64,000 bases of DNA. Source: Octopus sinensis (Eukaryota). Every line of letters starts with the position of its first letter. The stretch's first letter is position 1. Under the pieces are notes generated by a model. That model made no database searches, was not told the DNA's origin, and worked only from the letters and a program-made list of their open reading frames with translations. The stretch covers positions 205,902,001-205,966,000 of the forward strand of contig NC_042998.1 of the NCBI RefSeq assembly GCF_006345805.1, in the 5' to 3' direction. Below are positions 6,401-64,000 of this stretch, piece by piece. Position numbers and translations under genes: made by a program.

Positions 6401-7430
6401 ACATACATCCTATTATATATACGTCCGTACGTACATACATGCATGCCTGCATACATACGTACATACATACATACGTACATACATGCATACATACATGGAA
6501 GCATACATACATACGTACGGACATACGTACATACATGCATACATACATACATACATACATCCATACGTACGTACGTACATACATACATACGTACATAGAT
6601 ATTTAGATACATGCATACATACATACATACATACAAACATAGAAACATACATACATGAATACATACATACATACACACATACATACATACACACATACAT
6701 ACATGCATACACACATGCATGCATACATACATACATACATACATACATACATAAATTCATACATACATGCATTCGTACATACATACACACATACATACAT
6801 GCATGCATGCATGCATCATACATACATACTTACATACATAAATGCATACATACATGCATGCATACATACATACATACGTACGTATGTACATACATACATA
6901 CATACATACATACGTACATACATACGTACATACATACATAAATACATACATACATACATGCATGCATGCATACATACACACATGCATGCATGCATACATA
7001 CACACATACATCAATACGTACGTACGTACATACATACACACATACGTACATAAATACATAGATACACGCCTACATACATGCATACATACATACATACACA
7101 CATACATACATACACACATACATACATACATACATACATGCATGCATACATACAAACATACATACATACATACATACATACATACGTACGTAAATACGTA
7201 CATGCCTTCGTACATACATACATACATGCATGTATGCATTCATGCATATATACATACATACATGCATACATACTTACGTACATGCATGCATACCTATATA
7301 CATACGTACATACATACATACATACATACACATACATCCATACATACATGAATACATACTTACATACATACATACACACATACAAACATACACACACACA
7401 TACATAAACACATGTATACATACAATCATG
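415..7430 (+). repeat. Degenerate (TACA)n satellite, block 1
   Basis: Continuous 4-nt words TACA with variants TGCA, CACA, TATA, TACG, TGAA; no unique sequence. Confidence 0.98.
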
Positions 7431-7449
7431 TTAGTTAGTTAGTTAGTTA
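7431..7449 (-). repeat. (TAAC)n 3' tail of the CR1 element
   Basis: ttagttagttagttagtta lies directly beyond the short 3' UTR; CR1-group elements end in short tandem-repeat tails. Confidence 0.8.
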
Positions 7450-12288: not shown

Positions 12289-12320
<32 letters not shown>

Positions 12321-18300: not shown

Positions 18301-21221
18301 GTACATACATACATGCATGCATACATACAATCAAAAATACATACGTACGTACATACATACGTACTTGCATGCATACATACATACACATACATTCATACAC
18401 ACATACATACACACATACATACACACATACATACATGCATATATACAAACATCCATACATTCATAGATACATGAATACATACATACATACACACACACAC
18501 AAACATATACATACATACATACATACACACATACATACACACATACTCACATACATATATGCATACATACATACATACAACCATGCATACATACAAGAAC
18601 ACATACATACATACACACATACATACACACATACATACTTACAAACATAGACACATACATACATGCATACATACATACATGCATACATACATGCATACAT
18701 ACATGCATACGTACATGAATACATACATACAATATACATACACACATACATACATACACACATACATACATACGCATATACATGCATATGTGCGTATATA
18801 CATACACACATACATACATACATGCATACATACATGAATACATACATACATATGTACATACACACATACATACATACGTACCCACATACAGACATACAGC
18901 CATACATACATACATACCTACATACATACATGATTACATACATTCATACATACATACACACATACACACATACAAACATACATACATAAACACATACATG
19001 CATCCATACATGATTACTTACATACATACGTACTTACATTCATACACACATACATACATGCATGCATGCATACATACATACATACATACATACACACATA
19101 AATACATACACACATACATACATGCATACATACATTAATACATACATACACACATACATACATACATGCATGCGTGAATACATACATATATACATTCATA
19201 CATAAGTTCATACATACATGAATACATACATACATATCAACACATACACACATACCTACATACACACATACATATATACACACATATATACATACACACA
19301 TACACACATACAGACATGCATACATACATACATGCATACGTACAAACAAACATACATACGTACATACGTACAGACATACATTCATGCATACATACATACA
19401 TACACAGACACATACATGCATGCATATATACATGCATACATACATTCATAGATACGTATATACATACATACACATTCACACACATACAAATACATACATA
19501 CATACACACATATAAACCCACAGACACACATACATACATGCAAACATACATACATCCATGCTTACATACATTAATACACACATATTACATGAATACATAC
19601 ATACATACACATATACATACATACAGACATACATGAACACATACATGCATACTTGCATACATAAATACATGCATGCATACATACATGAATACATACATAC
19701 ATACATACATGCATGCATGCATAAATGCATACATACATACGTACGTACGTAGGTACATACATACATATACACATATATGCATACATACATACAAACATAC
19801 GTACGTACATACATATATGAATGCATGCATGCATCCATACACACATACATGCATGTATACATGCATACATATGTATGTACGTACATACATACATACATAC
19901 GTACGTACATACATACATAGATTTATACATGCATGCATACATACATACATACATAATACATGAGTACGTACGTACGTACGTACATACATATATTCGGACA
20001 TACATACGTACATACAAACATGCATACATACATGAATACATTCATTCATACATACATATATGCGTACCTACATACATACATGCATGCATACATATATTTA
20101 TGCATGCATACATACATACATACATAAGTACGTACGTACATACATGCATGCATGCATACATAGGTACATACGTGCGTACATACATACATGCATTCATACA
20201 TACATAAATATATACGTACGTACGTACATACATGCGTAGGTACTTACGGAAGTACATATATACAAAGATACACATATGCATACATGCATACATGCAAACA
20301 CACATACAGTCATACATACGTACGTATGTACGTCCATAATACATACATACACTCATACATACACACATATATACATGCATACATTCATACATACATACAT
20401 ACATACATATATACATATATACATGCATGGATACATACATACGTCCGTACGTACATACATGCATGCATGCAAACATACATACATACGTACATACGTACAT
20501 ACATGCATACATACATGCATTTATAAATACATACATACATACGTACATACGTACGTACGTACGTACGTACATACATCCTTTTATATATACATACGTCCGT
20601 ACGTACATACATGCATGCATGCATACTTACATACATACATACGTACATACATGCATACATACATGGAAGCATACATACATACGTATGGACATACGTACAT
20701 ACATGCATACATACATACATACATCCATACGTACGTACATACGTACATACATACATACGTACATAGATACATAGTTACATGCATACATACATACATACAT
20801 GCAAACATACAAACATACATACATGAATACATACATACATACACACATACATACATACACACATACATACACACATACATACATGCATACATACGTACAT
20901 GAATACATACATACATACATGCATGCATGCATACATACATACATACATACATAAATTCATACATACATTCCTTCGTACATACATACACACTTACATACAT
21001 GCATGCATGCATGCATTCATACATACATACTTACATACATAAATGCATACATACATGCATGCATACATACATACATACGTACGTATGTACATACGTACGT
21101 ACATACATACATAAATACATAAATACATACATACATGCATGCATGCATACATACATACATACATCAATACTTACGTACGTACATTCGTACACACCTACGT
21201 ACATAAATACATAGATACACG

Positions 21222-21255
<34 letters not shown>

Positions 21256-22204
21256 TATATGCATACATGCATACATACATACATACATATATACATATAT
21301 GCATACATACATACATACATACGTACGTACGTACATACATATATGCTTGCATGCATGCATGCATACATACATACATGCATGCATGTATACATACATACAT
21401 ACGTATGTACGTACGTACATACATACATACATTCATACGTACGTACATAAATACATACTTTTATGCATACATACATACATACATTCATGGATACATACAT
21501 ACATACATATATACGCATAACATACATACATGCATGGATACATACATACAAACACACATACATACATATAAACGTACTTACATACACACTTACATACATA
21601 CATACATTTATACATTCATGAATGTATACATACAGACATACATACACACACACATACACATACATACAAACACACATACATACATACACACATACATACA
21701 TACACACACACACACATACGTACATGCATACATACATACACACATGCATACGTACGTATTTATGTACGTACGTACATATATGTATGTATGTATTAATGCA
21801 TGTATGTATGCTTGCATGTACGCATACATACATACATACATATATACATATATGCATACATACATACATACATACGTACGTACGTAAATATATGCTTGCA
21901 TGCATGCATGCATGCATACATACATACCTGCATGTATACATACATACATACGTATGTACGTACATTCTTACATACATACATTCATACATTCATACGTACG
22001 TACATACATACATACATTTATACATGCATGCATACATACATACATACATACATAATACATGAATACGTACGTACGTACATACATATATACGTACATACAT
22101 ACGTACATACTTACATATATGCATGCATAAATACATACATACGTACATACGTACTAAGTACATACATACATGCTTGCATGTATGCAGACATACATACATA
22201 CATG

Positions 22205-22236
<32 letters not shown>

Positions 22237-22450
22237 CATATATGCATACATACATACATACGTACGTACGTACATACATATATGCTTGCATGCATGCATG
22301 CATACATACATATATACATGCATGAATACATACACACATATGTAGTACGTACGTACATACATACATACATTCATACGGACGTACGTACATAAATACATAC
22401 TTTTTTGCATACATACATACATACATTCATGGATACATACATACATACAT
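9701..22450 (+). repeat. Degenerate (TACA)n satellite, block 2
   Basis: Same word composition, richer in TACG/CGTA and TGCA; recurrent landmark motifs such as gtccataatac, taatacatgagtac, cctgcatgg, catccatccatcca. Confidence 0.98.
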
Positions 22451-24660
22451 ATGTATGTATGCATGTATGTACCTATGTCCGTACGTATGTATGTATGCAT
22501 GTATGTACGTATGTATGTATGTATGTATGCATGCATGCATGCATGTATGTACGTACGGACGTATATATATATAAAAGGATGTATGTACGTACGTACGTAC
22601 GTATGTACGTATGTATGTATGTATAAATGCATGTATGTATGCATGTATGTACGTGTGTATGTATGTTTGCATGCATGCATGTATGTACGTACGGACGTAT
22701 GTATGTATCTATGCATGTATATACTTATATATGCATGTAGGTATGTATGTATGAATGTATGCATGTATATGTGTGTGTGTATGAGTGTATGTATGTATTA
22801 TAGACGTACATACGTACGTATGTTTGACTGTATGTGTGATTGCATGTATGCATGTATGCATGTGTGTATCTTTGTATGTATGTACTTACGTAAGTCCCTA
22901 CGTACGTATGTATGTACTTACGTACGTATATATGTATGTCTGTATGAATGCATATATGCATGTACGCACGTATGTACGTATGTATGCATGCATGCATATA
23001 TGTACGTACGTACTTATGTATGTATGTATGTAGGCATGTATGTATGTATGCATGCATAAATATATGTATGCATGCATGTATGTATGTACGTACGTATATA
23101 TGTATGTATGTATGCATTTATTCATGTATGTATGCATGTACGTATGTATGTATGTATGCATATATGTATGTACGTATGTATGTCCGTATATATGTATGTA
23201 CGTACATACGTACGTACGTACTCATGTATTATGTATGTATGTATGCATGCATGCATGTATAAATGTATGTATGTATGTACGTACGTATGTATGTATGTAT
23301 GTACGTACATACGTATGTATGCATGTATACATGCATGTATGTATGTATGCATGCATGCATGCATTCATATATGTATGTACGTACGTATGTATGTATTCAT
23401 ATATGTGTATATGTATGTATGTATGTACCTACGTACGTACGTCTGTATGCATTTATGCATGCATGCATGTATGTATGTATGTAAGTATTCATGTATGTAT
23501 GCATGTATGTATTTATGTATGCAAGTATGCATGTATGTGTGTATGTATGTCTGTATGTATGTATATGTGTATGTATGTATGTATTCATGTAATATGTGTG
23601 TATTAATGTATGTAAGCATGGATGTATGTATGTGTGTATGTATGTATGTATTTGTATGTGTGTGAGTGTGTATGTATGTATGTAGGTATGTATGAATGTA
23701 TGTATGTATGTCTATATGCATGTATGTATGTATGTGTGTATGTATGTATGTATGCATGCATGTATGTATGTACGTACGTACGTATGTATGTATGTTTGTA
23801 TGTACGCATGCATGTATGTATGTATGCATGCATGCATGTATGTATGTATGTATGTATGTATGTATGTACGTACTTATGTACATACGTACTTATGTACATA
23901 CGTACGTATGTATGTATGCATGCATGCATGTATGTATGCATGTATGTATGTAAGTATGTATGTATGAATGCATGCATGCATGTATGTATGTGTGTATGTA
24001 TGTACGAAGGCATGTATGTATGAATTTATGTATGTATGTATATATGTATGTATGCATGCATGCATGTATGTATGTATTCATGTATGTATGTATGCATGTA
24101 TGTATGTGTGTATGTATGTGTGTATGTATGTATGTGTGTATGTATGTATGTATTCATGTATGTATGTTTGTATGTTTGCATGTATGTATGTATGTATGCA
24201 TGTATCTATGTATCTATGTACGTATGTATGTATGTACGAACGTACGTACGTATAGATGTATGCATGCATGCATGAATGTACGTACGGACGTATATATATA
24301 TATAAGGATGTATGTACGTACGTACGTATGTACGTACATACGTATGTACGTATGTATGTGTGTATGTATAAATGCTTGTATGTATGCATGTATGTACGTA
24401 TGTACGTATGTATGTATTTTTGCATGCATGCATGTATGTACATACGGACGTATGTATGTATCTATGCATGTATATATGTATATATGTATATATGCATGTA
24501 TATATGTATGTATGAATATAAGCATGTATATCTGTGTGTGTCTATGTGTGTATGTATGTATTATGGACGTACATACGTACGTATGTATGACTGTATGTGT
24601 GTTTGCATGTATGCATGTATACATGTCTGTATCTTTGTATGTATGTACTTATGTAAGTCC
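22451..24660 (-). repeat. Inverted satellite block (reads ATGT on +), copy 1
   Basis: Strand polarity switches at atacatacat|atgtatgtat (22450/22451) and back at gtaagtcc|ctgtatacatac (24660/24661); landmarks appear as reverse complements (gtactcatgtatta, ttatggacgtac). Confidence 0.95.
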
Positions 24661-27420
24661 CTGTATACATACAGACATACATACACACACACACATACAC
24701 ATACATACATACACACATACATCATACACACATACATACTTACACACATACACACATACGTACATGCATACATACATACATGCATACATACATGAATACA
24801 TACATACATACATACATGAATACATACGTAGATACAAACATACATACATAAACATATTTATGCATACATGCATACGTACACACATACATACATACATGGA
24901 TGCATACATACATACATATATGCATGCATGCATACATACATGCATTCATGTATGCATGCATATATACATATATACATATATACATGCATTCATACATACA
25001 TACATACGTCCGTACGTACATACATGCATGCATACATACGTACATACATGCATACATACATGCATTTATACACACGTACATACATACATACATACGTATA
25101 TACGTACGTACGTACATACATACTTACATACATATGTACGTCCGTACGTACATACATGCATGCATGCATACATACATACATACATATATACATACATATA
25201 TACATACGTACATACATGCATACATACATGCATGCATACATACATACGTACGTACATACATAAATACATACTTGCATACATACATACATACATACATACA
25301 TCCATACGTACATACGTACGTACATACATAGATACGTGCATACATACATACATACATGCATACATGCATACATATATGAATACATACATACACACATACA
25401 TACATACACACATTCATGCATTCATACATACATATATACATGAATACATATATACATACATGCATGCATACATACATACATACGTACATAAATTCATACA
25501 TACATGTCTTCGTACATTCATACGCACATACATACATGCATGCATGCATGCATTCATACATACATACATACGTACATACATGCATACATCCATGCGTGCA
25601 TACATACATACCATACATACATACGTACGTACATACATACATACATACACATACCTCCATACGTACGTACGTACATATATACACACATACGTACATGCAT
25701 ACATACATACAAACATACATACATGTATGCATTCATGAATACATGCATACATACATGCATACATACATACATACATACATACATACATACATACATACAT
25801 ACATACATGCATGCATGCTTACCTATATACAGACGTTCATACATACATGCATGCATACATACATACATACAAACATATATACGTACGTACATACATACAT
25901 ACATACATACATGCATGCATACATACATACACACATACATACATACACACACATACATGCATATGTACATACATACGTTCATACATACATGAAGTCTTGC
26001 ATACATACAAACACACATACACATACATACACACATACATACATGCACGCATAACACATACATACGTACATACATACACACATAAATACAGACACACATA
26101 CATATACACATACATGCATGCATCGTACACATACATACATACATACATACATACATACATACATACATCATACTTCATGCATACATACATACACACATAC
26201 ATACACACATACATACACACACACATATATACACACATACATGCATGCATACATACATACATACATTAATAAATACATACATACATACATACATTCATAC
26301 GAACGTACATATATGCATGCATGCTTGTATACATACATAAATGCATGCATGCATACGTACATACATACATGCATACATACATACATACCTACGTAAGTAC
26401 GTACGTACAGACATGCATGCATGCATGCATATATACATACATACATACATGCTTACATACTTACTTACGTACATACAAACCTGCATGGAGGGAATACATA
26501 CATACATACATGCATACATACAAACATACATACGTACGTACGTACTTACATGCATGCATACATACATACATACACACATACATACATACACACATACACA
26601 CATACGTACACACATACATACATATATGCATATATACATACATACATACATTCATACATACATGAATACATACATACATACACACTCACACACATAGATA
26701 AATATACATACATACACACATACATACATACACACATACATACCCACATACATACATGCATACATACTTTAATACATATATACTTACATGAATACATACA
26801 TACATACATACATACATACACACATACACACATACATACACACATTCATACATGCGTACATGCATACATGCATACATACATGAAAACTTACATACATACA
26901 TACACACATACATACATACACACACACACACATACGTACATGCATACATACATACACACATGCATACGTACGTATTTATGTACGTACGTACATATATGTA
27001 TGTATGTATTAATGCATGTATGTATGCTTGCATGTACGCATACATACATACATACATATATACATATATGCATACATACATACATACATACGTACGTACG
27101 TAAATATATGCTTGCATGCATGCATGCATGCATACATACATACCTGCATGTATACATACATACATACGTATGTACGTACATTCTTACATACATACATTCA
27201 TACATTCATACGTACGTACATACATACATACATTTATACATGCATGCATACATACATACATACATACATAATACATGAATACGTACGTACGTACATACAT
27301 ATATACGTACATACATACGTACATACTTACATATATGCATGCATAAATACATACATACGTACATACGTACTAAGTACATACATACATGCTTGCATGTATG
27401 CAGACATACATACATACATG

Positions 27421-27452
<32 letters not shown>

Positions 27453-27666
27453 CATATATGCATACATACATACATACGTACGTACGTACATACATATATG
27501 CTTGCATGCATGCATGCATACATACATATATACATGCATGAATACATACACACATATGTAGTACGTACGTACATACATACATACATTCATACGGACGTAC
27601 GTACATAAATACATACTTTTTTGCATACATACATACATACATTCATGGATACATACATACATACAT
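24661..27666 (+). repeat. Degenerate (TACA)n satellite, block 3
   Basis: TACA polarity restored between the two inverted blocks. Confidence 0.95.
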
Positions 27667-29882
27667 ATGTATGTATGCATGTATGTACCTATGTCCGTAC
27701 GTATGTATGTATGCATGTATGTACGTATGTATGTATGTATGTATGCATGCATGCATGAATGTACGTACGGACGTATATATATATATAAAAGGATGTATGT
27801 ACGTACGTACGTACGTATGTACGTATGTATGTATGTATAAATGCATGTATGTATGCATGTATGTACGTGTGTATGTATGTTTGCATGCATGCATGTATGT
27901 ACGTACGGACGTATGTATGTATCTATGCATGTATATACTTATATATGCATGTAGGTATGTATGTATGAATGTATGCATGTATATATGTGTGTGTGTATGA
28001 GTGTATGTATGTATTATAGACGTACATACGTACGTATGTTTGACTGTATGTGTGATTGCATGTATGCATGTATGCATGTGTGTATCTTTGTATGTATGTA
28101 CTTACGTAAGTCCCTACGTACGTATGTATGTACTTACGTACGTATATATGTATGTCTGTATGAATGCATATATGCATGTACGCACGTATGTACGTATGTA
28201 TGCATGCATGCATATATGTACGTACGTACTTATGTATGTATGTATGTAGGCATGTATGTATGTATGCATGCATAAATATATGTATGCATGCATGTATGTA
28301 TGTACGTACGTATATATGTATGTATGTATGCATTTATTCATGTATGTATGCATGTACGTATGTATGTATGTATGCATATATGTATGTACGTATGTATGTC
28401 CGTATATATGTATGTACGTACATACGTACGTACGTACTCATGTATTATGTATGTATGTATGCATGCATGCATGTATAAATGTATGTATGTATGTGTGTAT
28501 GTATGTATGTATGTATGTACGTACATACGTATGTATGCATGTATACATGCATGTATGTATGTATGCATGCATGCATGCATTCATATATGTATGTACGTAC
28601 GTATGTATGTATTCATATATGTGTATATGTATGTATGTATGTACCTACGTACGTACGTCTGTATGCATTTATGCATGCATGCATGTATGTATGCATGTAT
28701 GTATTTATGTATGCAAGTATGCATGTATGTGTGTATGTATGTATGTATGCATGTATGTATGTATGTATGTCTATATGCATGTATGTATGTGTATGTATGT
28801 ATGTATTCATGTAATATGTGTGTATTAATGTATGTAAGCATGGATGTATGTATGTGTGTATGTATGTATGTATTTGTATGTGTGTGAGTGTGTATGTATG
28901 TATGTAGGTATGTATGAATGTATGTATGTATGTCTATATGCATGTATGTATGTATGTGTGTATGTATGTGTGTATGTATGTATGTATGTATGTACGTACG
29001 TACGTATGTATGTATGTTTGTATGTACGCATGCATGTATGTATGTATGCATGCATGCATGTATGTATGTATGTATGTATGTATGTATGTACGTACTTATG
29101 TACATACGTACTTATGTACATACGTACGTATGTATGTATGCATGCATGCATGTATGTATGCATGTATGTATGTAAGTATGTATGTATGAATGCATGCATG
29201 CATGTATGTATGTGTGTATGTATGTACGAAGGCATGTATGTATGAATTTATGTATGTATGTATATATGTATGTATGCATGCATGCATGTATGTATGTATT
29301 CATGTATGTATGTATGCATGTATGTATGTGTGTATGTATGTGTGTATGTATGTATGTGTGTATGTATGTATGTATTCATGTATGTATGTTTGTATGTTTG
29401 CATATATGTATGTATGTATGCATGTATCTATGTATCTATGTACGTATGTATGTATGTACGAACGTACGTACGTATAGATGTATGCATGCATGCATGAATG
29501 TACGTACGGACGTATATATATATAAAAGGATGTATGTACGTACGTACGTATGTACGTACATACGTATGTACGTATGTATGTGTGTATGTATAAATGCTTG
29601 TATGTATGCATGTATGTACGTATGTACGTATGTATGTATGTTTGCATGCATGCATGTATGTACATACGGACGTATGTATGTATCTATGCATGTATATATG
29701 TATATATGTATATATGCATGTATATATGTATGTATGAATATAAGCATGTATATCTGTGTGTGTCTATGTGTGTATGTATGTATTATGGACGTACATACGT
29801 ACGTATGTATGACTGTATGTGTGTTTGCATGTATGCATGTATACATGTCTGTATCTTTGTATGTATGTACTTATGTAAGTCC
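27667..29882 (-). repeat. Inverted satellite block, copy 2
   Basis: Near-identical to 22451-24660 at an offset of ~5216-5222, with the same junction sequences. Confidence 0.95.
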
Positions 29883-32800
29883 CTGTATACATACAGACAT
29901 ACATACACACACACATACACATACATACATACACACATACATCATACACACATACATACTTACACACATACACACATACGTACATGCATACATACATACA
30001 TGCATACATACATGAATACATACATACATACATACATGAATACATACGTAGATACAACATACATACATAAACATATTTATGCATACATGCATACGTACAC
30101 ACATACATACATACATGGATGCATACATACATACATATATGCATGCATGCATACATACATTGCATTCATGTATGCATGCATATATACATACATATATACA
30201 TATATACATGCATTCATACATACATACATACGTCCGTACGTACATACATGCATGCATACATACGTACATACATGCATACATACATGCATTTATACACACG
30301 TACATACATACATACATACGTATATACGTACGTACGTACATACATACTTACATACATATGTACGTCCGTACGTACATACATGCATGCATGCATACATACA
30401 TACATACATATATACATACATATATACATACGTACATACATGCATACATACATGCATGCATACATACATACGTACGTACATACATAAATACATACTTGCA
30501 TACATACATACATACATACATCCATACGTACATACGTACGTACATACATAGATACGTGCATACATACATACATACATGCATACATGCATACATATATGAA
30601 TACATACATACACACATACATACATACACACATTCATGCATTCATACATACATATATACATGAATACATATATACATACATGCATGCATACATACATACA
30701 TACGTACATAAATTCATACATACATGTCTTCGTACATTCATACGCACATACATACATGCATGCATGCATGCATTCATACATACATACATACGTACATACA
30801 TGCATACATCCATGCGTGCATACATACATACGTACATACATACATACGTACGTACATACATACATACATACATACATACCTCCATACGTACGTACGTACA
30901 TATATACACACATACGTACATGCATACATACATACAAACATACATACATGTATGCATTCATGAATACATGCATACATACATGCATACATACATACATACA
31001 TACATACATACATACATACATACATACATACATACATGCATGCATGCTTACCTATATACAGACGTTCATACATACATGCATGCATACATACATACATACA
31101 AACATATATACGTACGTACATACATACATACATACATACATGCATGCATACATACATACACACATACATACATACACACATACATGCATATGTACATACA
31201 TACGTTCATACATACATGAAGTCTTGCATACATACAAACACACATACACATACATACACACATACATACATGCACGCATAAACACATACATACGTACATA
31301 CATACACACATAAATACAGACACACATACATATACACATACATGCATGCATACGTACATACATACATACATACATACATACGTACATACTTCATGCATAC
31401 ATACATACACACATACATACACACATACATACACACACACATACATACACACATACATGCATGCATACATACATACATACATTAATAAATACATACATAC
31501 ATACATACATTCATACGAACGTACATATATGCATGCATGCTTGTATACATACATAAATGCATGCATGCATACGTACATACATACATGCATACATACATAC
31601 ATACCTACGTAAGTACGTACGTACAGACATGCATGCATGCATGCATATATACATACATACATACATGCTTACATACTTACTTACGTACATACAAACCTGC
31701 ATGGAGGGAATACATACATACACATGCATACATACAAACATACATACGTACGTACGTACTTACATGCATGCATACATACATACATACACACATACATACA
31801 TACACACATACACACATACATACACACATACATACATATATGCATATATACATACATACATACATTCATACATACATGAATACATACATACATACACACT
31901 CACACACATAGATAAATATACATACATACATACACCATACATACATACACACATACATACCCACATACATACATGCATACATACTTTAATACATATATAC
32001 TTACATGAATACATACATACATACATACATACATACACACATACACACATACATACACACATTCATACATGCGTACATGCATACATGCATACATACATGA
32101 AAACTTACATACATACATACACACATGCATACATAAAGTCATACATACATACATGCTTGCATGCGTAAATACATACATACAAACACACGTACTAAGTACA
32201 TATATACATGCTTGCATGTATGCATACATACATACATATATACATATATGCATACATACATACTACATACGTACGTACGTACATACATATATGCTTGCAT
32301 GCATGCATGCATACATACATACATTCATGTATACATACATTCGTATGTACGTACGTACATACATACATACATTCATACGTACGTACATACATACATACAT
32401 TTATACATGCATGCATGCATACATACATACATACATACATAATACATGAGTACGTACGTACGTACGTTTATACATATATACGTACATACATACGTACATA
32501 CATATATACATGCATACATACATGAATACATACATACATACATATATACGTACGTTCATACATTTATGCATGCATACATACATTTATGCATACATACATA
32601 CATGCATACATACATATGTACGTACGTACATACATGCATGCATACATACATACATACATACATACGTACGTACATACATACATGCATTCATACATACATA
32701 CATGCATACATACATACATACATACGTACGTACGTCCATAATACATACATACATACACACATATATACATGCATACATACATACATACGTACATGCATAC

Positions 32801-37758: not shown

Positions 37759-38495
37759 TCCTTTTGGTCTCTTTAGTCTTGTCTCCGGTCCTAGCGTGGC
37801 ATCACAAGACAAACAAAAATTGCTGTGTACCGTGCACGTGTACTGACATCACTCCTTCACTCATGTGAGACATGGACCCTTTACAAACGTCAATAAAGGT
37901 ACTTGAACGCTTTCATGAGATGTCTGTGACACATTTTGCCTGTTGGCTGGAACTTCAAAACTCCAGACACACAGGTCCTGAGGAAAACTGATATCTTGAG
38001 CATTGAGGCAATGGTGAACAAGCACTGGTTATGTTGGACTGGACACCTTATTAGAATTGAGGATAGCAGGATCCCTAAATAGATGCTCTGTGGGGAACTT
38101 GTTAGTGGGAAGAGACCCCGGCAGAAACCAAGGCTGCAATTTGAGGACTGTGTCAAGTATTCATTAAAAGCCTGTGATATGCAGGAGACCAGCTGGGAGA
38201 GCAGTGCCTGTCATCGCCACAGATGGAAAAAGCAGGTTAAGGAGAAGGTCGACACCTTTGAGAGAGTACGTATTCTGCATGAAGAATTTAAGCATGCTGC
38301 TCAAAAGCGCACTGCTAGGGTAGTGAATGGGGAAAGCTTGGTCTGCGATGGTTGTAGTCATGTAAGCTTGTCAAGAGCAGGCCCCATCAGCCACCAAAGG
38401 AGTCATAAATGCAAAAGATAAGTTGGACCTAGAGCACATAATGTTCCTAAAGGTCAGCAATGGTCTTCCTCGGTCACAAGTGGATGGCCATCATA
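37759..38495 (+). mobile_element. Decayed RTE-clade LINE 3' portion (second, distinct copy)
   Basis: GITRQTKIAVYRARVLTSLLHSCETWTLY, WTGHLIRIEDSRIPK, GELVSGKRPRQKPRLQFEDCVK, terminal CDGCSHVSLSRAGPISHQRSH; ends in ggatggccatcatatcatc. Confidence 0.88.
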
Positions 38496-38496
38496 T

Positions 38497-39166
38497 CATC
38501 GTCGTTTAACGTCCGTTCTCCATGCTAGCAAGGGTTGGACGGTTTCGACCGGGGTTCTGGGAAGCCAGAAGGCTGCACCAGGCTCCAGTCTAATCTGGCA
38601 ATGTTTCTACAGCTGGATTCCCTTCCTAACGCCAACCACTCCGTGAGTGTAGTGGGTGCTTTTTACGTGCCACCTGCACAGGTGCCAGGCGGGGCTGGCA
38701 ACGGCCACGGTCAGATTGGTGTATTTTATGTGCCACCGGCACGGAAGCCAGTCGAGCGGTGCTGCATCGGCCACGGAGTCGGATAGTGCTTTTTACGTAC
38801 CACCAGACCAGGGATCCTGGCTGGTTCAATTCGATTCGATTTCGCTTTGCCCAACATGTCTTCACAAGCAAAGGGAGTGGCATGGGTGCCTGTCGTACGG
38901 TCGCATTGGAGTATTTTAGTGTCACGGCCACGAGTCGGATAGTGCTTTTTACGTACCACCAGAAAGGGATCCTGGCTGGTTCAATTCGATTTCAATTTCG
39001 CTTGCCCCAACATGTCTTCACAAGCAAAGGGAGTTGGCATGGGTGCCTGTCGTACGGTCGCATTGGAGTATTTTACGTGCCCCGGCCACGAGTCGGATAG
39101 TGCTTTTTACGTACCACCAGGCCAGGGATCCTGGCTGGTTCAATTCGGTTTCGATTTCGATTTCGA
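38497..39166 (-). mobile_element. RTE-family 3' UTR/SINE-like element with internal ~158-bp tandem repeats
   Basis: Reverse complement contains ggtggcacgtaaaagcacccactacactc...gttggcgttaggaagggaatccagctgtagaaac, also seen at 39350, 50470 and 54110; repeat units start at 38771, 38928 and 39086. Confidence 0.8.
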
Positions 39167-39524: not shown

Positions 39525-40618
39525 CTGAAAATGTACAGAAAGTAGACTCCATCAACTGCCATGGGGGAAAGTTAGAGGTAGTAGATAGCTTCTGTTACCA
39601 AGGTGATAAAGTTAGTAGTGGAGGTAGATACTCCAAGAGCATAGCTGTCAGAATAAGGTTAGGCTGGGCAAAGTTTAGAGAGCTCCTGCCTCTGCTTGCA
39701 ACAAAGGGCTTCTCTCTCAGAGTGAAAGACAGATTGTATGATGCCTGGGTGCAAACAACTATGTTACAAGGACATGTGTAGGCTTGAAAGAAATGAAGTC
39801 AGTATGCTTCACTGGATGTGCAATGTCAGTGTGCATGTTCGACAGAGTGTAAGCATCTTGAGAGAAAAGTTAGGCATAAGAGGCATCAGATGTGTGCAAG
39901 AGAGAGGAATGCACTGGTATGGTCATGTGACACATATGGATGAGGACAACTGTGTAAAGAAGTGCTGATCCTTAACTGTGGAGGGAACCTATGGTAGAGA
40001 TAGACCCAAGAAGGCTTGGGATGAGGTGGTGGTAAAACATGATCTCCAGACTTTGGGCCTCACAGAGGCAATGACTAGTGAGCAAGACCTTTGGTGATAT
40101 GCTGTGCTTGAGAAGACCTGTCAAGCCAAGTAAAATCGTAGTTGTGGCTGATGCTGGTGTTACATAATTGACCAAGACCTTTGGCATTATACTGTGCTTG
40201 AAAGGAAGACCTATCAAGCCAAGTAAAACCACAGTTATGGCAGATATTGGTGTTATGCAAATGGCACCTGTGCCTGTTGCACATAAAAACACCTTTCAAG
40301 TGTTGGACCTCACAGAAGCAAGGACTGAGACCATTTGGATCATGTCATGCTTCAAGCATTGGGCCTCACAGAGACAATGACCATATGACATTATGTTGTA
40401 CTGGACAAAACCCTACAAACCAAGTAAAGCTGCAATCATGACAGATACTGGTGTCACACAAATGGTACCCATGCCAGTAGCATGTAAAAGTACCCATTAC
40501 ACACTCAGAGTGTATCCAGCTGTAGAAACCAAGCCAAAACAGACTGGAGTCTGGTGCAGCCTTCCAGAGTGCCAGCCCTGGTCAAACCCATGATGTTAAA
40601 TGATGATGATGATGATGA
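39525..40618 (+). mobile_element. Decayed RTE LINE 3' end with repeated 3' UTR segments and (GAT)n tail
   Basis: Translates as LEVVDSFCYQGDKVSSGG...RIRLGWAKFRELLPLLATKGFSLRVK...WYGHVTHMDEDNCVKKC; homologous to 53416-54285; ends atgatgatgatgatgat. Confidence 0.85.
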
Positions 40619-41835: not shown

Positions 41836-41952
41836 TGAGATGCGTAGAGGATCTTGATACTGGAGATGTGGAGTGAATCACCAGACCAGTCCCAAGGGTC
41901 AAAGGACAGCAAAAGACTGCAGTGGCAGACATAAGAGGAGAGAGAAAGAGAG

Positions 41953-41972
41953 AGATAAGATAGATAGATAGG

Positions 41973-42036
<64 letters not shown>

Positions 42037-42313
42037 AAGAGATAGATAGAGATAGATAGATAAATAGATAGACAGACAGATAGAAAGAGATAGATAGAAA
42101 GAGATAGATAGAAAGAGATAGATAGAAAGAGATAGATAGATAGATAGATAGAAAGAGATAGATAGATAGATAGATAGATAGATACATAGATAGATAGATA
42201 GATAGATAGACAGATAGATAGATAGATAGATAGATAGACAGACAGATAGAGATATAGAAAGAGATAGATAGATAGATAGACAGACAGACAGGTAGAAAGA
42301 GATAGATAGAAAG

Positions 42314-42344
<31 letters not shown>

Positions 42345-42460
42345 CAGATAGATAAACAGACAGATATATAGACAGACAGACAGATAGAAAGAGATAGATA
42401 GATAGATAGAAATAGATAGATAGGTAGATAGACGGACAAACAGATGGATGGATAGAGAGG
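41953..42460. repeat. (AGAT)n / GATA-type microsatellite, ~500 bp
   Basis: Direct reading; variants AGAC and AGAAAG. Confidence 0.97.
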
Positions 42461-57701: not shown

Positions 57702-60700
57702 TTATGGAGGCAAAGACACTGCACTGCACAGTGAATTAGCATTTTCACTGCCTGCTAAACACTTCTTCAGTTGTGGTAAAACATTATCTGCAACTAATAA
57801 CATGTCATCTGTCTCAACATGAGGTAGACTATCGTTTAACTTTAATAAAAAACTACTTTGAGACAAGGAACATTTCTGTACTGCAATATTGTGATACAGA
57901 AGTTTGTCAAACACTGTGGAAGATATCCATGAAGGATTGACATCACTCAGAAGAAAATGTCTCTCTCCATTGTGTTCAATAAATCTTACAACTCTATTAC
58001 TTAGCTGTGTCATTCCTCCCAAAACGAGTTCTTTGTCTGGAGATGGTGAATTGAGAGACACAGCCTTGTTCTGATCAGAATCAGAATCAGTTTGTCTGTC
58101 GGGTTGTTCACTGTTTAGTTTAGTTTTATGTAAAGGAGTGTTTTCATAATTTGACAGAGGAACAGAATCACAGAGACCTGGCAAAGAAGAGGAAGTTTGT
58201 ATACCATCAGATGGAGATGTGAAAATCCCATTTGAGCAATTTAGACTTAAGGATGACCTCAAAACATTTGTTTCCAAATTTACTGATGATGGACATTTGT
58301 CTGGAATTGGATGCTCTGTAGAATCTTTATGTGACAGACAAGTTTTTAACGTACCATAAAGTGTTAAAGAATTATGTAAGTCAGTTTCCATATCTGCATT
58401 ATATTTAAAACTTTCTGCTGACGGTTCAAATATGCCTGACACTGGCCGCTTAGGTGGTTTACGATATAAATTGCAGCATTCTAGTTTTGTCAATGAACCT
58501 GACTCTGCTGGAGATTGTTGGCAGAGACAAGAGCATCTATAACCCGTTTTATGTAAAGATTGAACTGGATTCTCCCTGGCAGACACAAATGTATTTTGTT
58601 CAGTTTTTTCTCCCAAACCTTCAGACCATTTAGGATCAAAAACACCCGTATTATCTGGATCCCAGTCTTGGACACATTTTACAAGCTTACATTCTTTAAA
58701 ACTATAGAAGAAATGATAGAGGAGTTCTGCATCAGACAATAACATGATACCAAGTGGCGTCGCTCGATTACCATTGAAGACCAGACTAGATTCTAAAAGG
58801 TACTTCAAAGCAAAAGACCTCATGTAATGTGGCAGCTCTAAGTAAGGTAAACTATAGTCTCGATATTTAGTCCGATAAAACACAATTTGATTTTTCCCAA
58901 GAAAACATTTTTGAACAACTTCTCGGACAATAACATACTTTTTTACATTAATGACTACACAGAGGAGTTTGTGACCATGAAACTTGACAAATTTATGAAT
59001 GATCGAATGAGGAGGAGTATTGCTCACTTGAGAATAGCAACTACCACTGAAAGCATGAGTCACACATCCAGTGAAATTAATGTCTGTTTGAATTTGCTTG
59101 TCATGAAATGAACTGGGATCTCCATGATGTATCAAATCTGGAGAAGTGAAAACACGGCCATATCTGACAGGACAATTCATTAAAATTCTATTATGCAGAG
59201 TTTGTAAATCATATTTTAATGGCAGGGGCGATTGAAAGGGGTTTCCTGGTGAAAGCTGATTTTCAAGAAATAATGGTTCAATGTGGTTTTCTTTTATATC
59301 TTCAGAAGACTTGGCCTCCTGAAATGACTTTTTATTTACACATTTAGTTCTTTTATTAAAATTAGTGTAAAATTTCTTTAGCAAACGACTCTTCCTTACT
59401 TGTTTGGACCATTTGAATTTCCTCTGTTGGGGTTTAGCAACTAAAGACAATGAATTTAAGATTCCTTGGCTTTTAACATCTTTGTGCTTTTCATTTTTTT
59501 TGTCTGAGTATAAAGTCTTGGTAATTTTATCAGAGTACAGAGTTTTGAAGTCTGTGATTGTTTTGCATAATTTCACTTCACAGGAAGGAAGAGGAAACAA
59601 AGAATTACACCAATTGCTCTTCGTGGTTGGTCTTGAATTACTGTTAACAGGTTTCAGCAATGGTTCACCGACAGAAGAGTCACAAATAATTTCATTGATG
59701 AAGTCACAGCTACCAACAGAGACTATTTCACCATTCTTTGTTTTTGTGACAACCTCTTTGGAAGATTTGTCCAATAAATCTGATGGAACTACCACAGATG
59801 TCTTGGCTGACTCCTCTTTACTCAGAATATTGTCATTGTCAGTTTGCATTGGTTCTTCTGGTGTAGACATCACGGAGGATTTGCAACCATCAGAAACGTC
59901 AACCGATGTTTCATTCTCAGCTAATTCCATTGAACAACTTTCGGTAACAGGACACACAATAACATTAGCATGAACAGCATCTTTTAGTAAATGCTCAGAT
60001 TTGGTCAAATTTGACAGATTATCACTAACAGGTTCTTCATAGTCAGTTACTATGGCAACAATATTTATATCACCATTCTCACTGACCTCCAAACAGGGAG
60101 CTTTGTTTAAATCTTCCAATTCTTCAATAACACAGATTTTCTTGGAAAGATTTAAGAAATTCATTTCAGATTGATGAACCACAGTCACTTGGTCCTGTTT
60201 GTCGTTATCTTTGACTTGTTTCTCGTTATTAATCAATTGAAAGATGTCACCTGCAGCAACATTATCAAGTTTCTTTGGTGCAATTTCGGTTAAGCAACTA
60301 CCAACAACAATTTCATTTGGTTGCTGTTCCTGCTCGTGTTGTTGTTGTTGTTGTGGTTTTGGTGGTGGTGGTGGTGGTGGTGACTGTTGTTGTTGTGGTT
60401 TTGGTGGTGGTGGTGGTGACTGTTGTTGTTGTTGTTGTGGAGACTGCTTTAGTTGTGGTGGCTGTGGCTGTTGTAGTTCGGGTGACTGCTGTTGCTGTGG
60501 TAACTGTTGTTGTTGTTCTTGCTGTAGTTTTGTTTTTAACTCTTGCAATTCTTCTTGTGTTTGTTGTTGTTTTTGAAGCTGTCTTAAGTTTGGTTGTTTT
60601 TGTTGTTGTTGTGACAGTTGAGATCCCTCCTCCTCCCCTAGTTGTGATGAAACAACAGCAGTCATGATGCCTGGTGGTGTTCGGGCTGTCCAAACATCTT

Positions 60701-63700
60701 CTTTCACATCTTTCAGCACAATTAGTTTATCACTGGTTTTCTCTTCAACAGGCAGTTTAGGGTTTGTTTTGTGACTGCCATCACAACCACCATCATCAGC
60801 ACCACCACAACCACCATCATCAGCACCACCACAACCATCACAATCATCAACATCACCACCACTATCATCACCATCAGTATTGTTGTTGTTGTTGTTCGTG
60901 ATGTTATTGCTACCGTTGTTGTGGTTGTTGTAAGGTTTTAAATGCTGAACAGAATTTGGCTTTTCAGTTTCAGACCTGGGACAGAAACTTTCATCCAAAA
61001 TATGTTTCTCCTTCAGGAAGATATTGAATTGGTTCTTCTGTTTCCAATATTTGGAATTTCCAGCAGTTCGAGCACAATCTTTCTCCTTATTTTCTGTTTC
61101 TTCCTTCTTATTCTCCACCTTTTCCGTTTCCATTCGATCCTGGGATTTTCCAGTCACTCCTTGACAGTTCTTGGTGATTACACTATTGTTTCCAGTCTCA
61201 TTACTTACAGAAACTAACTTTTTTGAAGTTGCCAACTCATTTTCACATGCTAATAGGGCCTTCTCTAACAAACTTTGGCCTTTTCTGCGCTGACAGCTGT
61301 CATTGGTTGATGGTTTGACAGGATAATACGGAGCATAGACAGCAGACGCTTCTGGGAGTGTCTTGAAATCTGATTTTATAGATGAAATCTCATCATTGGT
61401 AAAATTAGTAGATGGACTTCGGTCAGGACTTGGCAACAAACACACGGTGGAATTAATGCTACTCTCATCACTGGAAACCAATTGAGATAAATCTTCTTTT
61501 TCAGTTGATTCCACATCAGATTTCTGCTGATCATCCTGAAGTTTAACTGGTGATTTACAGGATTCAAATTCCTTTTGTTTGATTTTCATCCAAGAAGAAT
61601 TGGTAATTTCAACATCTGGATTAGCATCGGTTAATAATTTGCTGGTATTAATAGATTTGTCTAATGAGGAATTAGTGGAATTTGAATTCTCTTTTAAAAC
61701 AGAAACTTTTGACAATGGAGAAAATGGTTGTATTCCTGGACTGACCTTATCTTCCATGATGGTAAAAACAATTTCTTTTTCCAGAGTTCTTTCTCCAAAA
61801 GAGTCGTTGTTTTCTGTTGCTTTGGAATTGATGCTTGTGTTTTTCAAAGAGTCCATAGAACTTTCAGCAGTACTTAGAGTGTCAACTGACTGCCTCGAAT
61901 GGATCACAGATTTTGGTGCCATCGTTTCCCCGGCTTGAACTCCATCAGAATCATCAGTGTCGTCCAGGGTGACACACTTTTCATTGTTAACACTTTTCAC
62001 ATGACGGTTATTCGTCCTGCGTTCAACTTGTCTCTCCTCAGGCCAACACTTCCATATTTTGTCATTTGTCTCAACAGGACTTTGATTCGAGCTTGAATTA
62101 GACAAAGAATGTAAAATATCTACGATATCACAGTATTCTGGAGCATTGTTGCTGCTGTTGGTTTTGTCAAAAAATTTATCAGTTTGGTTAGCACCTAGCG
62201 ATTTATTAGTTATAGAGGCAGGGATATAGTTCTTGGTGGAAGATTCGTAGTTGTTGCCTAATAATTTGTTCATTGACTCCGGAGGCCAACAAGAAGTGTC
62301 TTCATCAAGTTCCAAGTTCTCCCGCTTGCGTGGCTCGTATTTTTTACGTTTTGATCTACTTTCCAGCTTTAATCTGTAGTCCTGAACAATGTCTGTCGAT
62401 AAAAGATTCTCTTTTTGATTGTCTTCAAGGCTGACATTTATAATATCTGGCAACCTACGCTTTTTTGTGACATTACAAGCACCAGTTGCTGCTATCAGGT
62501 CTTTGGATCTGTGAGGAACACCAGACAAAGATAAAGAGTAGGAACTGGTGATCACCAAGTCACAAGGAGGTTCGTCGTTTTGATGGTTGGCTTTTTCAAC
62601 AACAGAAGATCGGGGTCGTGCAAGAGCTGAGGGAGCAGAGACAGAAGGGGCAGAAAGATTGGGGGCAGAGACAGTGGGAGGGGCAGAAATAGTAGGAGTA
62701 GTAACAATAAGAGCAGGAGGAGGAAGAGATGGTGGTGGCGGTGGTGGTGGTGGAGGTGGTGATGGAGAAGAGTCAGTGTCTCTGGACAAATCTATTACAT
62801 CTTCAATTATATGATGATTACGTTTTGAAAATGAGGAATTCAATGCCATGATATGGTGTTTCTTGGGAAGATGACTAAGGGTAGACTGACTACTAGACGT
62901 CACCTGAATATGGTTCTTTGGGTTAGAATTAGTAGTTAAAATATCAGAAATTACAGATTCTGAACTAGTTGTCTTTGAGCTCTTATTGAGTTTTGATTCA
63001 TTTTGATGCTTTTTCATGAGCCTTTTGAGAAAATATTCAGCAAAGTTATTTGAAGAATTTGAAGAAGTGACAGAATCTGGAAGACAGTTGGAAGATTTTG
63101 AAGAATTTGAAGTTGACAGTTTGGTACAATTAAAATCATTTGTAATAATCGCAGGATTTTCAAAGTTATTTGGTTTGTTTGGCACTGTACTTTCGACCCC
63201 ACCCAAGTTCCCCGTCTTTTCATTGTCCTTTGTGAGTTTCTCTTTCTTAGTCTGTGGGGGTGGGCTTTTCTCAGGCATTTTGTACCAAGACCTGCGTGTC
63301 ACGGAACCGCCACACACCGATGTCGTTGTTTCACATTTCTGTACAACAGTTTTCTCAATGAAATTAAGGTCTGCATGGATGTGATTGCCAACCGGATGCA
63401 GGCAGTCAATGTTTTCTAACTGAGTGGGTGGCATGACCACAGGCAGCTCTGGTAGTGGAATGTCATTTGGATAGCGTGTATACCAGCCCCGAAGGTTGGC
63501 AGGGGTAGTAGGGTGTACAGAACCGAGAATAGGGTCTACTAATGAGCTGTGGGGTTGTGTTACAGATGGTAAATTAAAGGAAGGTGGAGGGACACGGTTA
63601 GTGACTCTACAGGGATATGACTGTTGAGGTGAAAGAACATTACCATTTGTAACAGAATGGTTTAACCATCCACCAGGAGGAGGCCAACCAGTCCAAGGGG

Positions 63701-63896
63701 GCGCTCGTGGTGACCAATTGATGTTATTGTAACATGTACGATCTGGCACAAATGGTGGTGCCAGACCAGCATAGTAACCCATTGTTTGATGGTAATGAGA
63801 AATTTGAGTTGTGAACACATTTTCCTCTAACTGTAGCCGGCTGTTGCTGCGTCTTCGCTCTTTCTTAGAATGAGGTTCTTCATTTCTCGAAGACAT
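57702..63896 (-). CDS. 2064-aa largely disordered protein with C-terminal SKI/SNO/DAC-like domain(s); probable nuclear regulator, encoded in one giant exon
   Basis: 6195-nt open frame in AT-rich DNA, no transposon motifs; poly-P, poly-Q and S/N-rich tracts; basic NLS-like clusters; ordered segments at 58991-58706 and 58013-57760 that align by eye to the Dachshund/SKI homology domain. ORF reality ~0.95; domain call ~0.7. Confidence 0.9.
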   Translation of the reverse strand: MSSRNEEPHSKKERRRSNSRLQLEENVFTTQISHYHQTMGYYAGLAPPFVPDRTCYNNINWSPRAPPWTGWPPPGGWLNHSVTNGNVLSPQQSYPCRVTNRVPPPSFNLPSVTQPHSSLVDPILGSVHPTTPANLRGWYTRYPNDIPLPELPVVMPPTQLENIDCLHPVGNHIHADLNFIEKTVVQKCETTTSVCGGSVTRRSWYKMPEKSPPPQTKKEKLTKDNEKTGNLGGVESTVPNKPNNFENPAIITNDFNCTKLSTSNSSKSSNCLPDSVTSSNSSNNFAEYFLKRLMKKHQNESKLNKSSKTTSSESVISDILTTNSNPKNHIQVTSSSQSTLSHLPKKHHIMALNSSFSKRNHHIIEDVIDLSRDTDSSPSPPPPPPPPPPSLPPPALIVTTPTISAPPTVSAPNLSAPSVSAPSALARPRSSVVEKANHQNDEPPCDLVITSSYSLSLSGVPHRSKDLIAATGACNVTKKRRLPDIINVSLEDNQKENLLSTDIVQDYRLKLESRSKRKKYEPRKRENLELDEDTSCWPPESMNKLLGNNYESSTKNYIPASITNKSLGANQTDKFFDKTNSSNNAPEYCDIVDILHSLSNSSSNQSPVETNDKIWKCWPEERQVERRTNNRHVKSVNNEKCVTLDDTDDSDGVQAGETMAPKSVIHSRQSVDTLSTAESSMDSLKNTSINSKATENNDSFGERTLEKEIVFTIMEDKVSPGIQPFSPLSKVSVLKENSNSTNSSLDKSINTSKLLTDANPDVEITNSSWMKIKQKEFESCKSPVKLQDDQQKSDVESTEKEDLSQLVSSDESSINSTVCLLPSPDRSPSTNFTNDEISSIKSDFKTLPEASAVYAPYYPVKPSTNDSCQRRKGQSLLEKALLACENELATSKKLVSVSNETGNNSVITKNCQGVTGKSQDRMETEKVENKKEETENKEKDCARTAGNSKYWKQKNQFNIFLKEKHILDESFCPRSETEKPNSVQHLKPYNNHNNGSNNITNNNNNNTDGDDSGGDVDDCDGCGGADDGGCGGADDGGCDGSHKTNPKLPVEEKTSDKLIVLKDVKEDVWTARTPPGIMTAVVSSQLGEEEGSQLSQQQQKQPNLRQLQKQQQTQEELQELKTKLQQEQQQQLPQQQQSPELQQPQPPQLKQSPQQQQQQSPPPPPKPQQQQSPPPPPPPKPQQQQQHEQEQQPNEIVVGSCLTEIAPKKLDNVAAGDIFQLINNEKQVKDNDKQDQVTVVHQSEMNFLNLSKKICVIEELEDLNKAPCLEVSENGDINIVAIVTDYEEPVSDNLSNLTKSEHLLKDAVHANVIVCPVTESCSMELAENETSVDVSDGCKSSVMSTPEEPMQTDNDNILSKEESAKTSVVVPSDLLDKSSKEVVTKTKNGEIVSVGSCDFINEIICDSSVGEPLLKPVNSNSRPTTKSNWCNSLFPLPSCEVKLCKTITDFKTLYSDKITKTLYSDKKNEKHKDVKSQGILNSLSLVAKPQQRKFKWSKQVRKSRLLKKFYTNFNKRTKCVNKKSFQEAKSSEDIKENHIEPLFLENQLSPGNPFQSPLPLKYDLQTLHNRILMNCPVRYGRVFTSPDLIHHGDPSSFHDKQIQTDINFTGCVTHAFSGSCYSQVSNTPPHSIIHKFVKFHGHKLLCVVINVKKYVIVREVVQKCFLGKNQIVFYRTKYRDYSLPYLELPHYMRSFALKYLLESSLVFNGNRATPLGIMLLSDAELLYHFFYSFKECKLVKCVQDWDPDNTGVFDPKWSEGLGEKTEQNTFVSARENPVQSLHKTGYRCSCLCQQSPAESGSLTKLECCNLYRKPPKRPVSGIFEPSAESFKYNADMETDLHNSLTLYGTLKTCLSHKDSTEHPIPDKCPSSVNLETNVLRSSLSLNCSNGIFTSPSDGIQTSSSLPGLCDSVPLSNYENTPLHKTKLNSEQPDRQTDSDSDQNKAVSLNSPSPDKELVLGGMTQLSNRVVRFIEHNGERHFLLSDVNPSWISSTVFDKLLYHNIAVQKCSLSQSSFLLKLNDSLPHVETDDMLLVADNVLPQLKKCLAGSENANSLCSAVSLPP
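60300..60930 (-). repeat. Coding low-complexity tract (poly-Q/P, N-, D- and G-rich)
   Basis: QQQQSPPPPP(PP)KP occurs twice; 24-bp unit caaccaccatcatcagcaccacca (CGGADDGG) twice near 60784-60831; frame preserved throughout. Confidence 0.9.
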
Positions 63897-63957: not shown

Positions 63958-63980
63958 CTGAAAGAGAAAAGAAACAAATG
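63958..63980 (-). other. Splice acceptor opening the giant exon
   Basis: Minus strand catttgtttcttttctctttcag|gtaacatt: long pyrimidine tract plus CAG; the exon would begin at 63957. Confidence 0.7.
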
Positions 63981-64000
63981 GTAAGAACAGCTAGTAAAAT

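Follow-up and report, generated by a model that had tools for sequence, protein, structure and literature searches.

We analyzed a 64,000-nucleotide stretch of Octopus sinensis DNA (NCBI RefSeq assembly GCF_006345805.1, contig NC_042998.1, positions 205,902,001 to 205,966,000 of the forward strand), referred to here as the window. Toward its end, on the reverse strand, lies an uninterrupted open reading frame (ORF) of 2064 amino acids (aa) plus a stop codon, with 0 internal stops. Its translation is 100% identical to the database protein of LOC118762189 isoform X1 (P0013), which falls in a 90% cluster where the named entries are isoforms of this O. sinensis locus. The gene maps to chromosome CM016860.1 at ~205.95 Mb, and the nearest other called gene is more than 10 kb away. 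A sequence-only reading of this DNA had noticed two segments at the C-terminal end of the giant ORF that resemble the DHD (Dachshund homology domain) found in SKI, SnoN, and DACH proteins. Our analysis confirms the two segments, here called domain A and domain B, and supports their interpretation as DHD-like.

An in-frame stop lies 8 codons 5′ of the ATG, and a polypyrimidine tract followed by AG is found 61 nucleotides 5′ of the ATG. We therefore take the coding sequence (CDS) to be intronless and an intron in the 5′ untranslated region (5′-UTR) to be likely, the tract being a candidate 3′ splice site that points to a likely upstream 5′-UTR exon. The single exon of the sequence-only reading thus holds for the CDS and probably not for the transcript as a whole. 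The only differences between database isoforms X2 and X3 and the genomic ORF are deletions of 11-12 residues in low-complexity tracts. The in-frame segments missing from them, NNHNNGSNNIT and CGGADDGGCDGS, each fall in a repetitive tract, and the differences seem to reflect variation in repeat length or alignment artefacts, not true splicing.

An exhaustive phmmer search, run with the C-terminal 600 aa on 1.84 billion representatives, returned a family of 12 clusters. Those of its members that are named all come from molluscs, namely Octopus sinensis, O. vulgaris, Mizuhopecten, Argopecten, Haliotis, Mytilus, Magallana/Crassostrea, and Saccostrea. A word-indexed homolog search found no homolog with the last 452 aa and two fragments only with a domain-A profile. 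When the full-length protein was searched with phmmer against the family members, only one ortholog (P0002) was recovered. Identity to P0002 peaks at aa 1-300, domain A, and domain B and is 8-30% over most of the remainder; the CDS of P0002 is likewise intronless. In the scallop (Mizuhopecten NEDP02001165.1, positions 3001-12517), a 5-kb giant exon (aa 114-1788) contains both domains, with small exons on either side. The O. vulgaris ortholog is annotated as a pair of "hypothetical" models (CAI9716831.1 and CAI9716832.1, with 1108 and 821 aa), probably one gene broken at its low-complexity middle. Conservation of the 6.2-kb ORF across mollusc classes, with peaks at domains A and B, rules out a spurious ORF. 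This is a real, conserved gene of a family that is mollusc-wide rather than octopus-specific and has been seen so far in molluscs only. Members are annotated as "uncharacterized" or carry spurious low-complexity names, with no functional label in the databases seen, and no paper on the locus name or on tandem-DHD families turned up in literature searches. This agrees with the earlier suggestion of an undescribed, possibly lineage-specific branch.

Both segments were found in frame where they had first been placed, the FVKFHGHKLL...LLYHFF block of domain A at 58991-58706 and the MTQLSNRVV...LLKLN block of domain B starting at 58013. Domain A is the best-conserved block of the protein, with 68-82% identity to P0002 and 29-40% to other molluscs. 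Its signature is FHGxKLLC ... [MV]RE[LV][LV]xKCF ... GI[IM]xxxDAxxLYHFF ... C-x(3,4)-C, and the family consensus reads FHGxKLLC...MRELLxKCF...AKERDLxIPYxELP...GIIxxxDAxRLYHFFxGxKxC..C. All 11 members have a basic domain A (net charge +7 to +12, pI 9.3-9.8). In the alignment of these members, H1640, C1736, and C1741 (alignment positions H10, C106, and C111) are invariant, and C1646 (C16) is present in 10 of the 11; together these residues suggest a putative zinc site.

Domain B is 54-56% identical to its P0002 counterpart, and its net charge runs from -8 to +3 across members. The signature here is GG[IM][AT] ... R[FY][ILV] ... G ... D[LV] ... C[ST]xx[EQ]xxFLxxLxxxLP, with the family consensus GGIAxLY...FRFLVxDGxKFYP..DL...CSxxExxFLNxLEPxLP. 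The linker that separates the two domains is 18-34% identical to P0002 and varies from ~60 to ~270 aa among homologs. Bivalve and gastropod members carry an SDATIPY-type acidic motif between the domains, absent from the octopus protein, and extra sequence past domain B, in scallop partly from small 3′ exons. The octopus protein ends ~17 aa past domain B.

We modeled the structure with AlphaFold2 (AF2) from a 10-sequence family alignment. The predicted local distance difference test score (pLDDT) was mostly 75-87 in domain A and 67-86 in domain B, with values below 50 in the linker; a single-sequence AF2 run gave a pLDDT of 34 and was unusable. DSSP assigned strands (E) and helices (H) of the model in the order E-E-E-H-H-E-H-E-H in both domain A (E7-13, E16-23, E26-30, H31-38, H42-50, E59-60, H64-76, E90-93, H94-105) and domain B (E333-339, E342-349, E352-356, H357-360, H366-375, E380-382, H385-393, E407-410, H411-421). 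A DHD consists of a five-stranded antiparallel sheet and four helices, with α3 inserted in the β4-β5 wing (PMC2944819), and its order, β1β2β3-α1-α2-β4-α3-β5-α4, is present in both predicted domains. In a Foldseek search of the PDB, ranks 1-12 were exclusively DHDs of SnoN (3EQ5), DACH1 (1L8R), and SKI (1SBX). These matches had a probability of 1.00, a template modeling score (TMt) of 0.59-0.74, and a root mean square deviation (rmsd) of 2.7-4.4 Å over 92-105 columns, nearly the whole target. Rank 13 had an E value of 0.17 and was followed by APSES and SMARCB1 winged helices, which have been counted as DHD-like in the literature (PMC4509781). The AlphaFold and Foldseek comparison that the sequence-only reading had proposed thus folded both segments and matched at least one of them to DHDs.

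For the comparison at the sequence level, we took DHD reference sequences from the PDB, gathered 120 Ski_Sno proteins, and built profiles of 3 and 40 sequences. In hhalign, the β4-α4 half of domain A aligned to the 3-sequence profile with P=4.6e-4 (probability 33%) and to the 40-sequence profile with P=0.0038 (9%). A global alignment covered 86/86 DHD columns (E=1.5e-4) and placed FHG opposite LEG. Domain B aligned over 72-80 columns in full register, with P=0.017-0.027 and a probability of 2-3%. Against the 40-sequence SKI/DACH profile the family profiles scored 21.2 (A) and 16.3 (B), and of 200 column-shuffled DHD profiles, 1 and 3, respectively, reached those scores. The registers of A and B coincide with the predicted secondary structure, though the values are below usual HHsearch confidence. 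Pairwise BLASTP with the DACH1 DHD was weak, with E=0.89 for domain A and E=0.026 for domain B. The DACH1 sequence quoted in the sequence-only reading proved exact (100% to PDB 1L8R), and the register of its gapless pairing with the octopus block was recovered independently by hhalign and is also that of the BLASTP match of domain B. The TV[FY]xKL likeness on which it also drew is present in the octopus protein but is partly octopus-specific and not kept in the family. The family-conserved positions of that block are instead a Cys, [EQ], F/L, L, and the Leu-Pro turn. In domain A, GI[IM]xxxDAxRLY is retained, compared with GLITKTDAERL in SKI. Domain B keeps C[ST]xx[EQ]xxFLxxLxxxLP, compared with CTADQLEILKVMGILP in SKI, including a proline that matches the one setting the turn after α3 in SnoN.

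Several results weigh against a relationship to DHDs. Pfam Ski_Sno (PF02437) gave no match at E<=10 in the whole octopus protein, its last 452 aa, or either segment, none at E<=1 in 7 homologs, and none at E<=10 in 11 domain-A and 11 domain-B sequences scanned singly, so the Pfam test proposed in the sequence-only reading went against it. Searches of all PDB sequences with phmmer and with family hidden Markov models missed SKI, SnoN, and DACH1 and returned noise at E>0.2. The CLPQ motif and most of the groove residues listed for SnoN (PMC2944819) are not kept in A or B. In the hhalign register, CLPQ pairs with IVRE in octopus domain A ([MV]RE[LV] in the family) and with LLSD in octopus domain B (Px[EA]D in the family, also written x[SE]D[LV]). 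Of the CLPQ and groove features, only the Gly of CGL in domain A and the Leu-Pro turn in domain B are kept. The Foldseek E values for the DHD matches are modest, 1e-3 to 2e-2, and the alignment behind the AF2 model is shallow, with a predicted template modeling score (pTM) of 0.33. One might then suppose that the assignment is an artefact of a shallow alignment and chance similarity, that the domains have novel folds, or, at the extreme, that the ORF is non-functional. The 10 sequences in the alignment, the failure of single-sequence AF2, and the lack of a significant database match by any sequence-only method would fit this. We consider it highly unlikely, as all 12 of the top PDB matches come from the family that had been named beforehand from the letters alone, the domains reach a pLDDT of 70-87, and the ORF is conserved across mollusc classes.

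Two further points on this side concern the relation between the domains. In neither local nor global mode did hhalign find similarity between domain A and domain B, and BLASTP gave an 11/28 match that is off register. A recent tandem duplication was rejected on this ground, and any duplication must be ancient. Moreover, since the Foldseek output gives no query range, the three-dimensional match is certain for at least one domain only, and the identity counts in the hhalign register (12-22%) fail to show whether A or B gave it. Only one domain may thus be DHD-like, the other being an unrelated small α/β domain whose order of elements is alike by chance or model bias; the single Foldseek alignment per target, the lack of detectable similarity between A and B, and the low hhalign probabilities are what this explanation would predict. 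It is nevertheless unlikely in our judgment. The nine-element DHD order is found in both domains, in the expected register each independently outscores 98-99% of shuffled profiles, and each retains a different DHD sequence signature. Taken together, it is very likely that at least one domain is DHD-like and likely that both are.

The last point on this side is that viral Bro-N, KilA-N, and Ant-N domains match too, at lower quality, in a Foldseek search of BFVD (Ant N-terminal domain, E=0.022, probability 0.99, TMt 0.57). The domains could then belong to the Bro-N/KilA-N/Ant-N/APSES group, the gene deriving from a domesticated mobile-element or viral protein and the SKI/DACH likeness reflecting a shared winged-helix-like architecture. 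Among the PDB matches that rank under the DHDs are baculovirus Orf22-N and APSES domains, and Pfam P22_AR_N matches octopus domain A weakly (E=0.15-0.16). The CDS is intronless in two species, and the gene adjoins a large satellite with fragments of long interspersed nuclear elements. However, DHDs superpose far better than the viral domains, whose rmsd is 5.5-14.5 Å and TMt 0.20-0.57, and the profile alignments to the DHD are in register across the full domain. The P22_AR_N match is found in 1 of 11 members at 12.6 bits, far under the cutoff of 30.7. In addition, the scallop ortholog contains introns, and the octopus protein has no transposase, reverse transcriptase, or integrase domain in Pfam. 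We regard such an origin as quite unlikely.

Outside the two domains, which are predicted to be its folded modules, the protein is mostly of low complexity, and Pfam recognizes no family of any kind in its 2064 aa. The sequence-only reading had described some 1600 disordered residues before the domains. Composition and the absence of Pfam domains support this indirectly; in aa 1101-1200, 87% of the residues are disorder-promoting. The first ~300 aa, which lack a Pfam domain, are 54-80% identical to P0002 in 50-aa windows. A short linear motif, W[YC][KR]xP, occurs in every full-length family member. Three basic clusters resembling nuclear localization signals (NLSs), at aa 11-16, 478-481, and 516-525, may direct nuclear import, as judged from their residues. 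The coordinates of these and the other features are collected in Table 1.

The remainder of the window is dominated by a degenerate (CATA)n-type tetranucleotide satellite of ~36 kb, more than half of the window, with 8996 copies at 73% match. Its strand asymmetry is strong (GC skew -0.5), with local flips of polarity at ~22-24 kb and ~28-30 kb, and it yields dozens of spurious MYVC.../HTYI... ORFs. The satellite also contains a higher-order tandem duplication, in which a ~6-kb unit recurs ~5.2 kb downstream with 92.5% identity and takes in polarity-flipped stretches. Within the satellite lies a fragment of a non-long-terminal-repeat (non-LTR) retrotransposon, one ORF of which matches Pfam RVT_1 with E=6e-33; a GC-rich island (46% GC) is found at 8-10 kb. 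Between satellite and gene there are a short ORF, putatively a further transposable-element fragment, and tandem repeats made up of a 156-bp unit (2.5 copies, 93% match), a 93-bp unit (1.9 copies), and an (AGAT)n microsatellite (127 copies). Neither tRNA nor Rfam matches came out of scans of the window or of the half with the gene.

Table 1. Features of the LOC118762189 gene, its protein, and the surrounding window (window coordinates)
Feature	Coordinates	Strand	Basis
Complete intronless CDS, LOC118762189 isoform X1	57702..63896	-	ORF list, identity to P0013
Polypyrimidine tract and AG, candidate 3′ splice site of the coding exon	63958..63985	-	Sequence read
N-terminal ~300 aa, conserved in ortholog P0002, including basic cluster KKERRR (aa 11-16)	62997..63896	-	Identity windows
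WYKMP (aa 204-208), short linear motif W[YC][KR]xP	63273..63287	-	Regular expression and flank alignment, 11 members
NLS-like cluster KKRR (aa 478-481)	62454-62465	-	Read in sequence
NLS-like basic cluster KRKKYEPRKR (aa 516-525)	62322..62351	-	Read in sequence
In-frame segments missing from isoforms X2/X3 (ORF aa 990-1000 and 1030-1041)	60777-60812 and 60897-60929		
Poly-Q/poly-P low-complexity tract (aa ~1110-1215)	60252..60569	-	Translation
Domain A (aa 1632-1745), basic DHD-like domain	58662..59003	-	Conservation, AF2, hhalign
Span of four conserved His/Cys of domain A, candidate zinc ligands: H1640 (58977-58979), C1646 (58959-58961), C1736 (58689-58691), C1741 (58674-58676)	58674..58979	-	Domain-A alignment
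Linker between domains A and B (aa 1746-1956), variable, predicted unstructured	58029..58661	-	AF2, alignments
Domain B (aa 1957-2047), mostly acidic to neutral DHD-like domain	57756..58028	-	Conservation, AF2, hhalign
Degenerate (CATA)n-type satellite	415-36573		
Tandem duplication within satellite	20001-26000 and 25185-31227		Identity
Non-LTR retrotransposon fragment	8064-10201	-	
ORF of the retrotransposon fragment	8064-8921	-	Pfam RVT_1
Short ORF, putative transposable-element fragment	38083-38421	+	
Tandem repeats between satellite and gene	38768-39159, 40079-40255, and 41949-42432		

With somewhat better than even confidence, we favor the reading that this gene encodes a nuclear scaffold specific to molluscs, in which one DHD-like module is of the DNA-binding type and the other of the partner-binding type. 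Each module would adopt the DHD fold, a winged-helix-type α/β roll with a helix inserted in the wing, and both would have diverged past the reach of the Pfam Ski_Sno model. Domain A, basic and with its His/Cys cluster, may act like the DHD of DACH1, as a nucleic-acid-binding or chromatin-anchoring module. Domain B has a charge like that of SKI and SnoN and keeps the β4-α3-Leu-Pro-turn signature that lines their proposed partner-binding groove, and it may serve for protein docking. Short motifs for further partners would lie in the disordered remainder. The protein would then be a nuclear, chromatin-associated scaffold, a role in chromatin or transcription being a proposal to which we give just short of an even chance. 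The analysis shows the gene, its family, the conservation of the domains, their predicted fold, and their charge asymmetry; a location in the nucleus, the binding of DNA, partners, or zinc, and repressor activity of any kind are inferred from these, as is the corepressor role implied by the sequence-only reading. A more specific proposal is that of an unrecognized branch of the SKI/SnoN/DACH superfamily, in which two tandem, anciently diverged DHDs end a disordered scaffold encoded by a giant exon, one a basic, zinc-stabilized DNA binder and the other an acidic docker. Such a protein would be a chromatin regulator specific to the lineage, with an arrangement of DHDs unlike that of any characterized protein. 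We hold this tentatively, as possible but doubtful.

SKI, SnoN, SKOR, DACH, and SKIDA1 are central regulators of TGF-beta/BMP signaling, organ determination, and Polycomb function, and to our knowledge all of them have a single, easily recognized DHD. If a family confined to one phylum has two cryptic DHD-like modules, of a kind that standard domain annotation overlooks, this would widen the known sequence space and architectures of the fold. For those who study molluscs and cephalopods, the protein would be a candidate lineage-specific factor in chromatin or transcription. It has long been debated whether the targets of DHDs are DNA or proteins, and the charge asymmetry between A and B is a natural experiment on this question. 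The practical value of the family is limited until expression and function are shown.

Among known systems, the wider winged-helix class shares the overall architecture predicted here but superposes much more poorly. DHD-like folds have been described as exclusive to metazoan chromatin-associated proteins, and the class to which the SMARCB1/INI1 N-terminal domain, the BCOR PUFD, and DNTTIP1 belong is built on a winged helix whose wing holds an additional helix (PMC4509781). Winged-helix and APSES structures are low-ranking Foldseek matches to the mollusc model (5AJ1, 1BM8, 4UX5, and 2XFV; probability 0.07-0.3, rmsd 6.5-10 Å), and neither this class nor the APSES/KilA-N/Bro-N group has sequence signatures in common with the family. 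SKIDA1 and SKOR/Fussel are, by description, likewise long low-complexity proteins around a DHD; they are set apart, also by description, by one Pfam-recognizable Ski_Sno domain near the N terminus. SKIDA1 further carries a C-terminal DUF4584, and SKOR carries a SMAD-binding domain.

The DachBox-N of DACH1/2 (1L8R) is a structural match with a TMt of 0.59. In a gap-poor alignment, 17/79 aligned residues of DACH1 are identical to octopus domain B, and the DACH1 DHD is basic (+3) like domain A, which is more basic still. The basic face of the DACH1 DHD has been proposed to bind DNA, and the DHDs of SKI and SnoN are thought to bind proteins (PMC2944819). The family is not a DACH subfamily, as domains A and B are 12-22% identical to DHDs, lie at the C terminus rather than in the N-terminal half, and sit in another architecture in a protein with no Pfam family. 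Nor is the gene the canonical SKI/DACH ortholog. Octopus has a separate, Pfam-recognized DACH (O. bimaculoides P0106), 83% identical to human DACH1.

SKI and SnoN (1SBX and 3EQ5) give the best structural matches, with a TMt up to 0.74 and an rmsd of 2.7-3.3 Å, and have the same β1β2β3-α1-α2-β4-α3-β5-α4 order as the octopus model. They have G[LI]Ixx(x)DAxRL in common with domain A and C[ST]xx[EQ]xx[IFL]Lxx[LM]xxxLP, with its turn proline, in common with domain B, and their charge (-3/-2) is mildly acidic like that of domain B. The mollusc protein differs from them in having two copies at its C terminus rather than one in the N-terminal half, in the replacement of CLPQ, in the absence of a Ski_Sno match, and in an insertion between α2 and β4 and a C-terminal Cys-x(3,4)-Cys tail in domain A. 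The SAND-like SMAD4-binding domain (c-SKI_SMAD_bind) was not found by Pfam in the octopus protein or 7 homologs. By sequence the family thus lies outside Pfam Ski_Sno, while its predicted structure is that of the DHD fold. We therefore place it as a new family and architecture within the DHD-like fold class, outside the curated Ski_Sno family.

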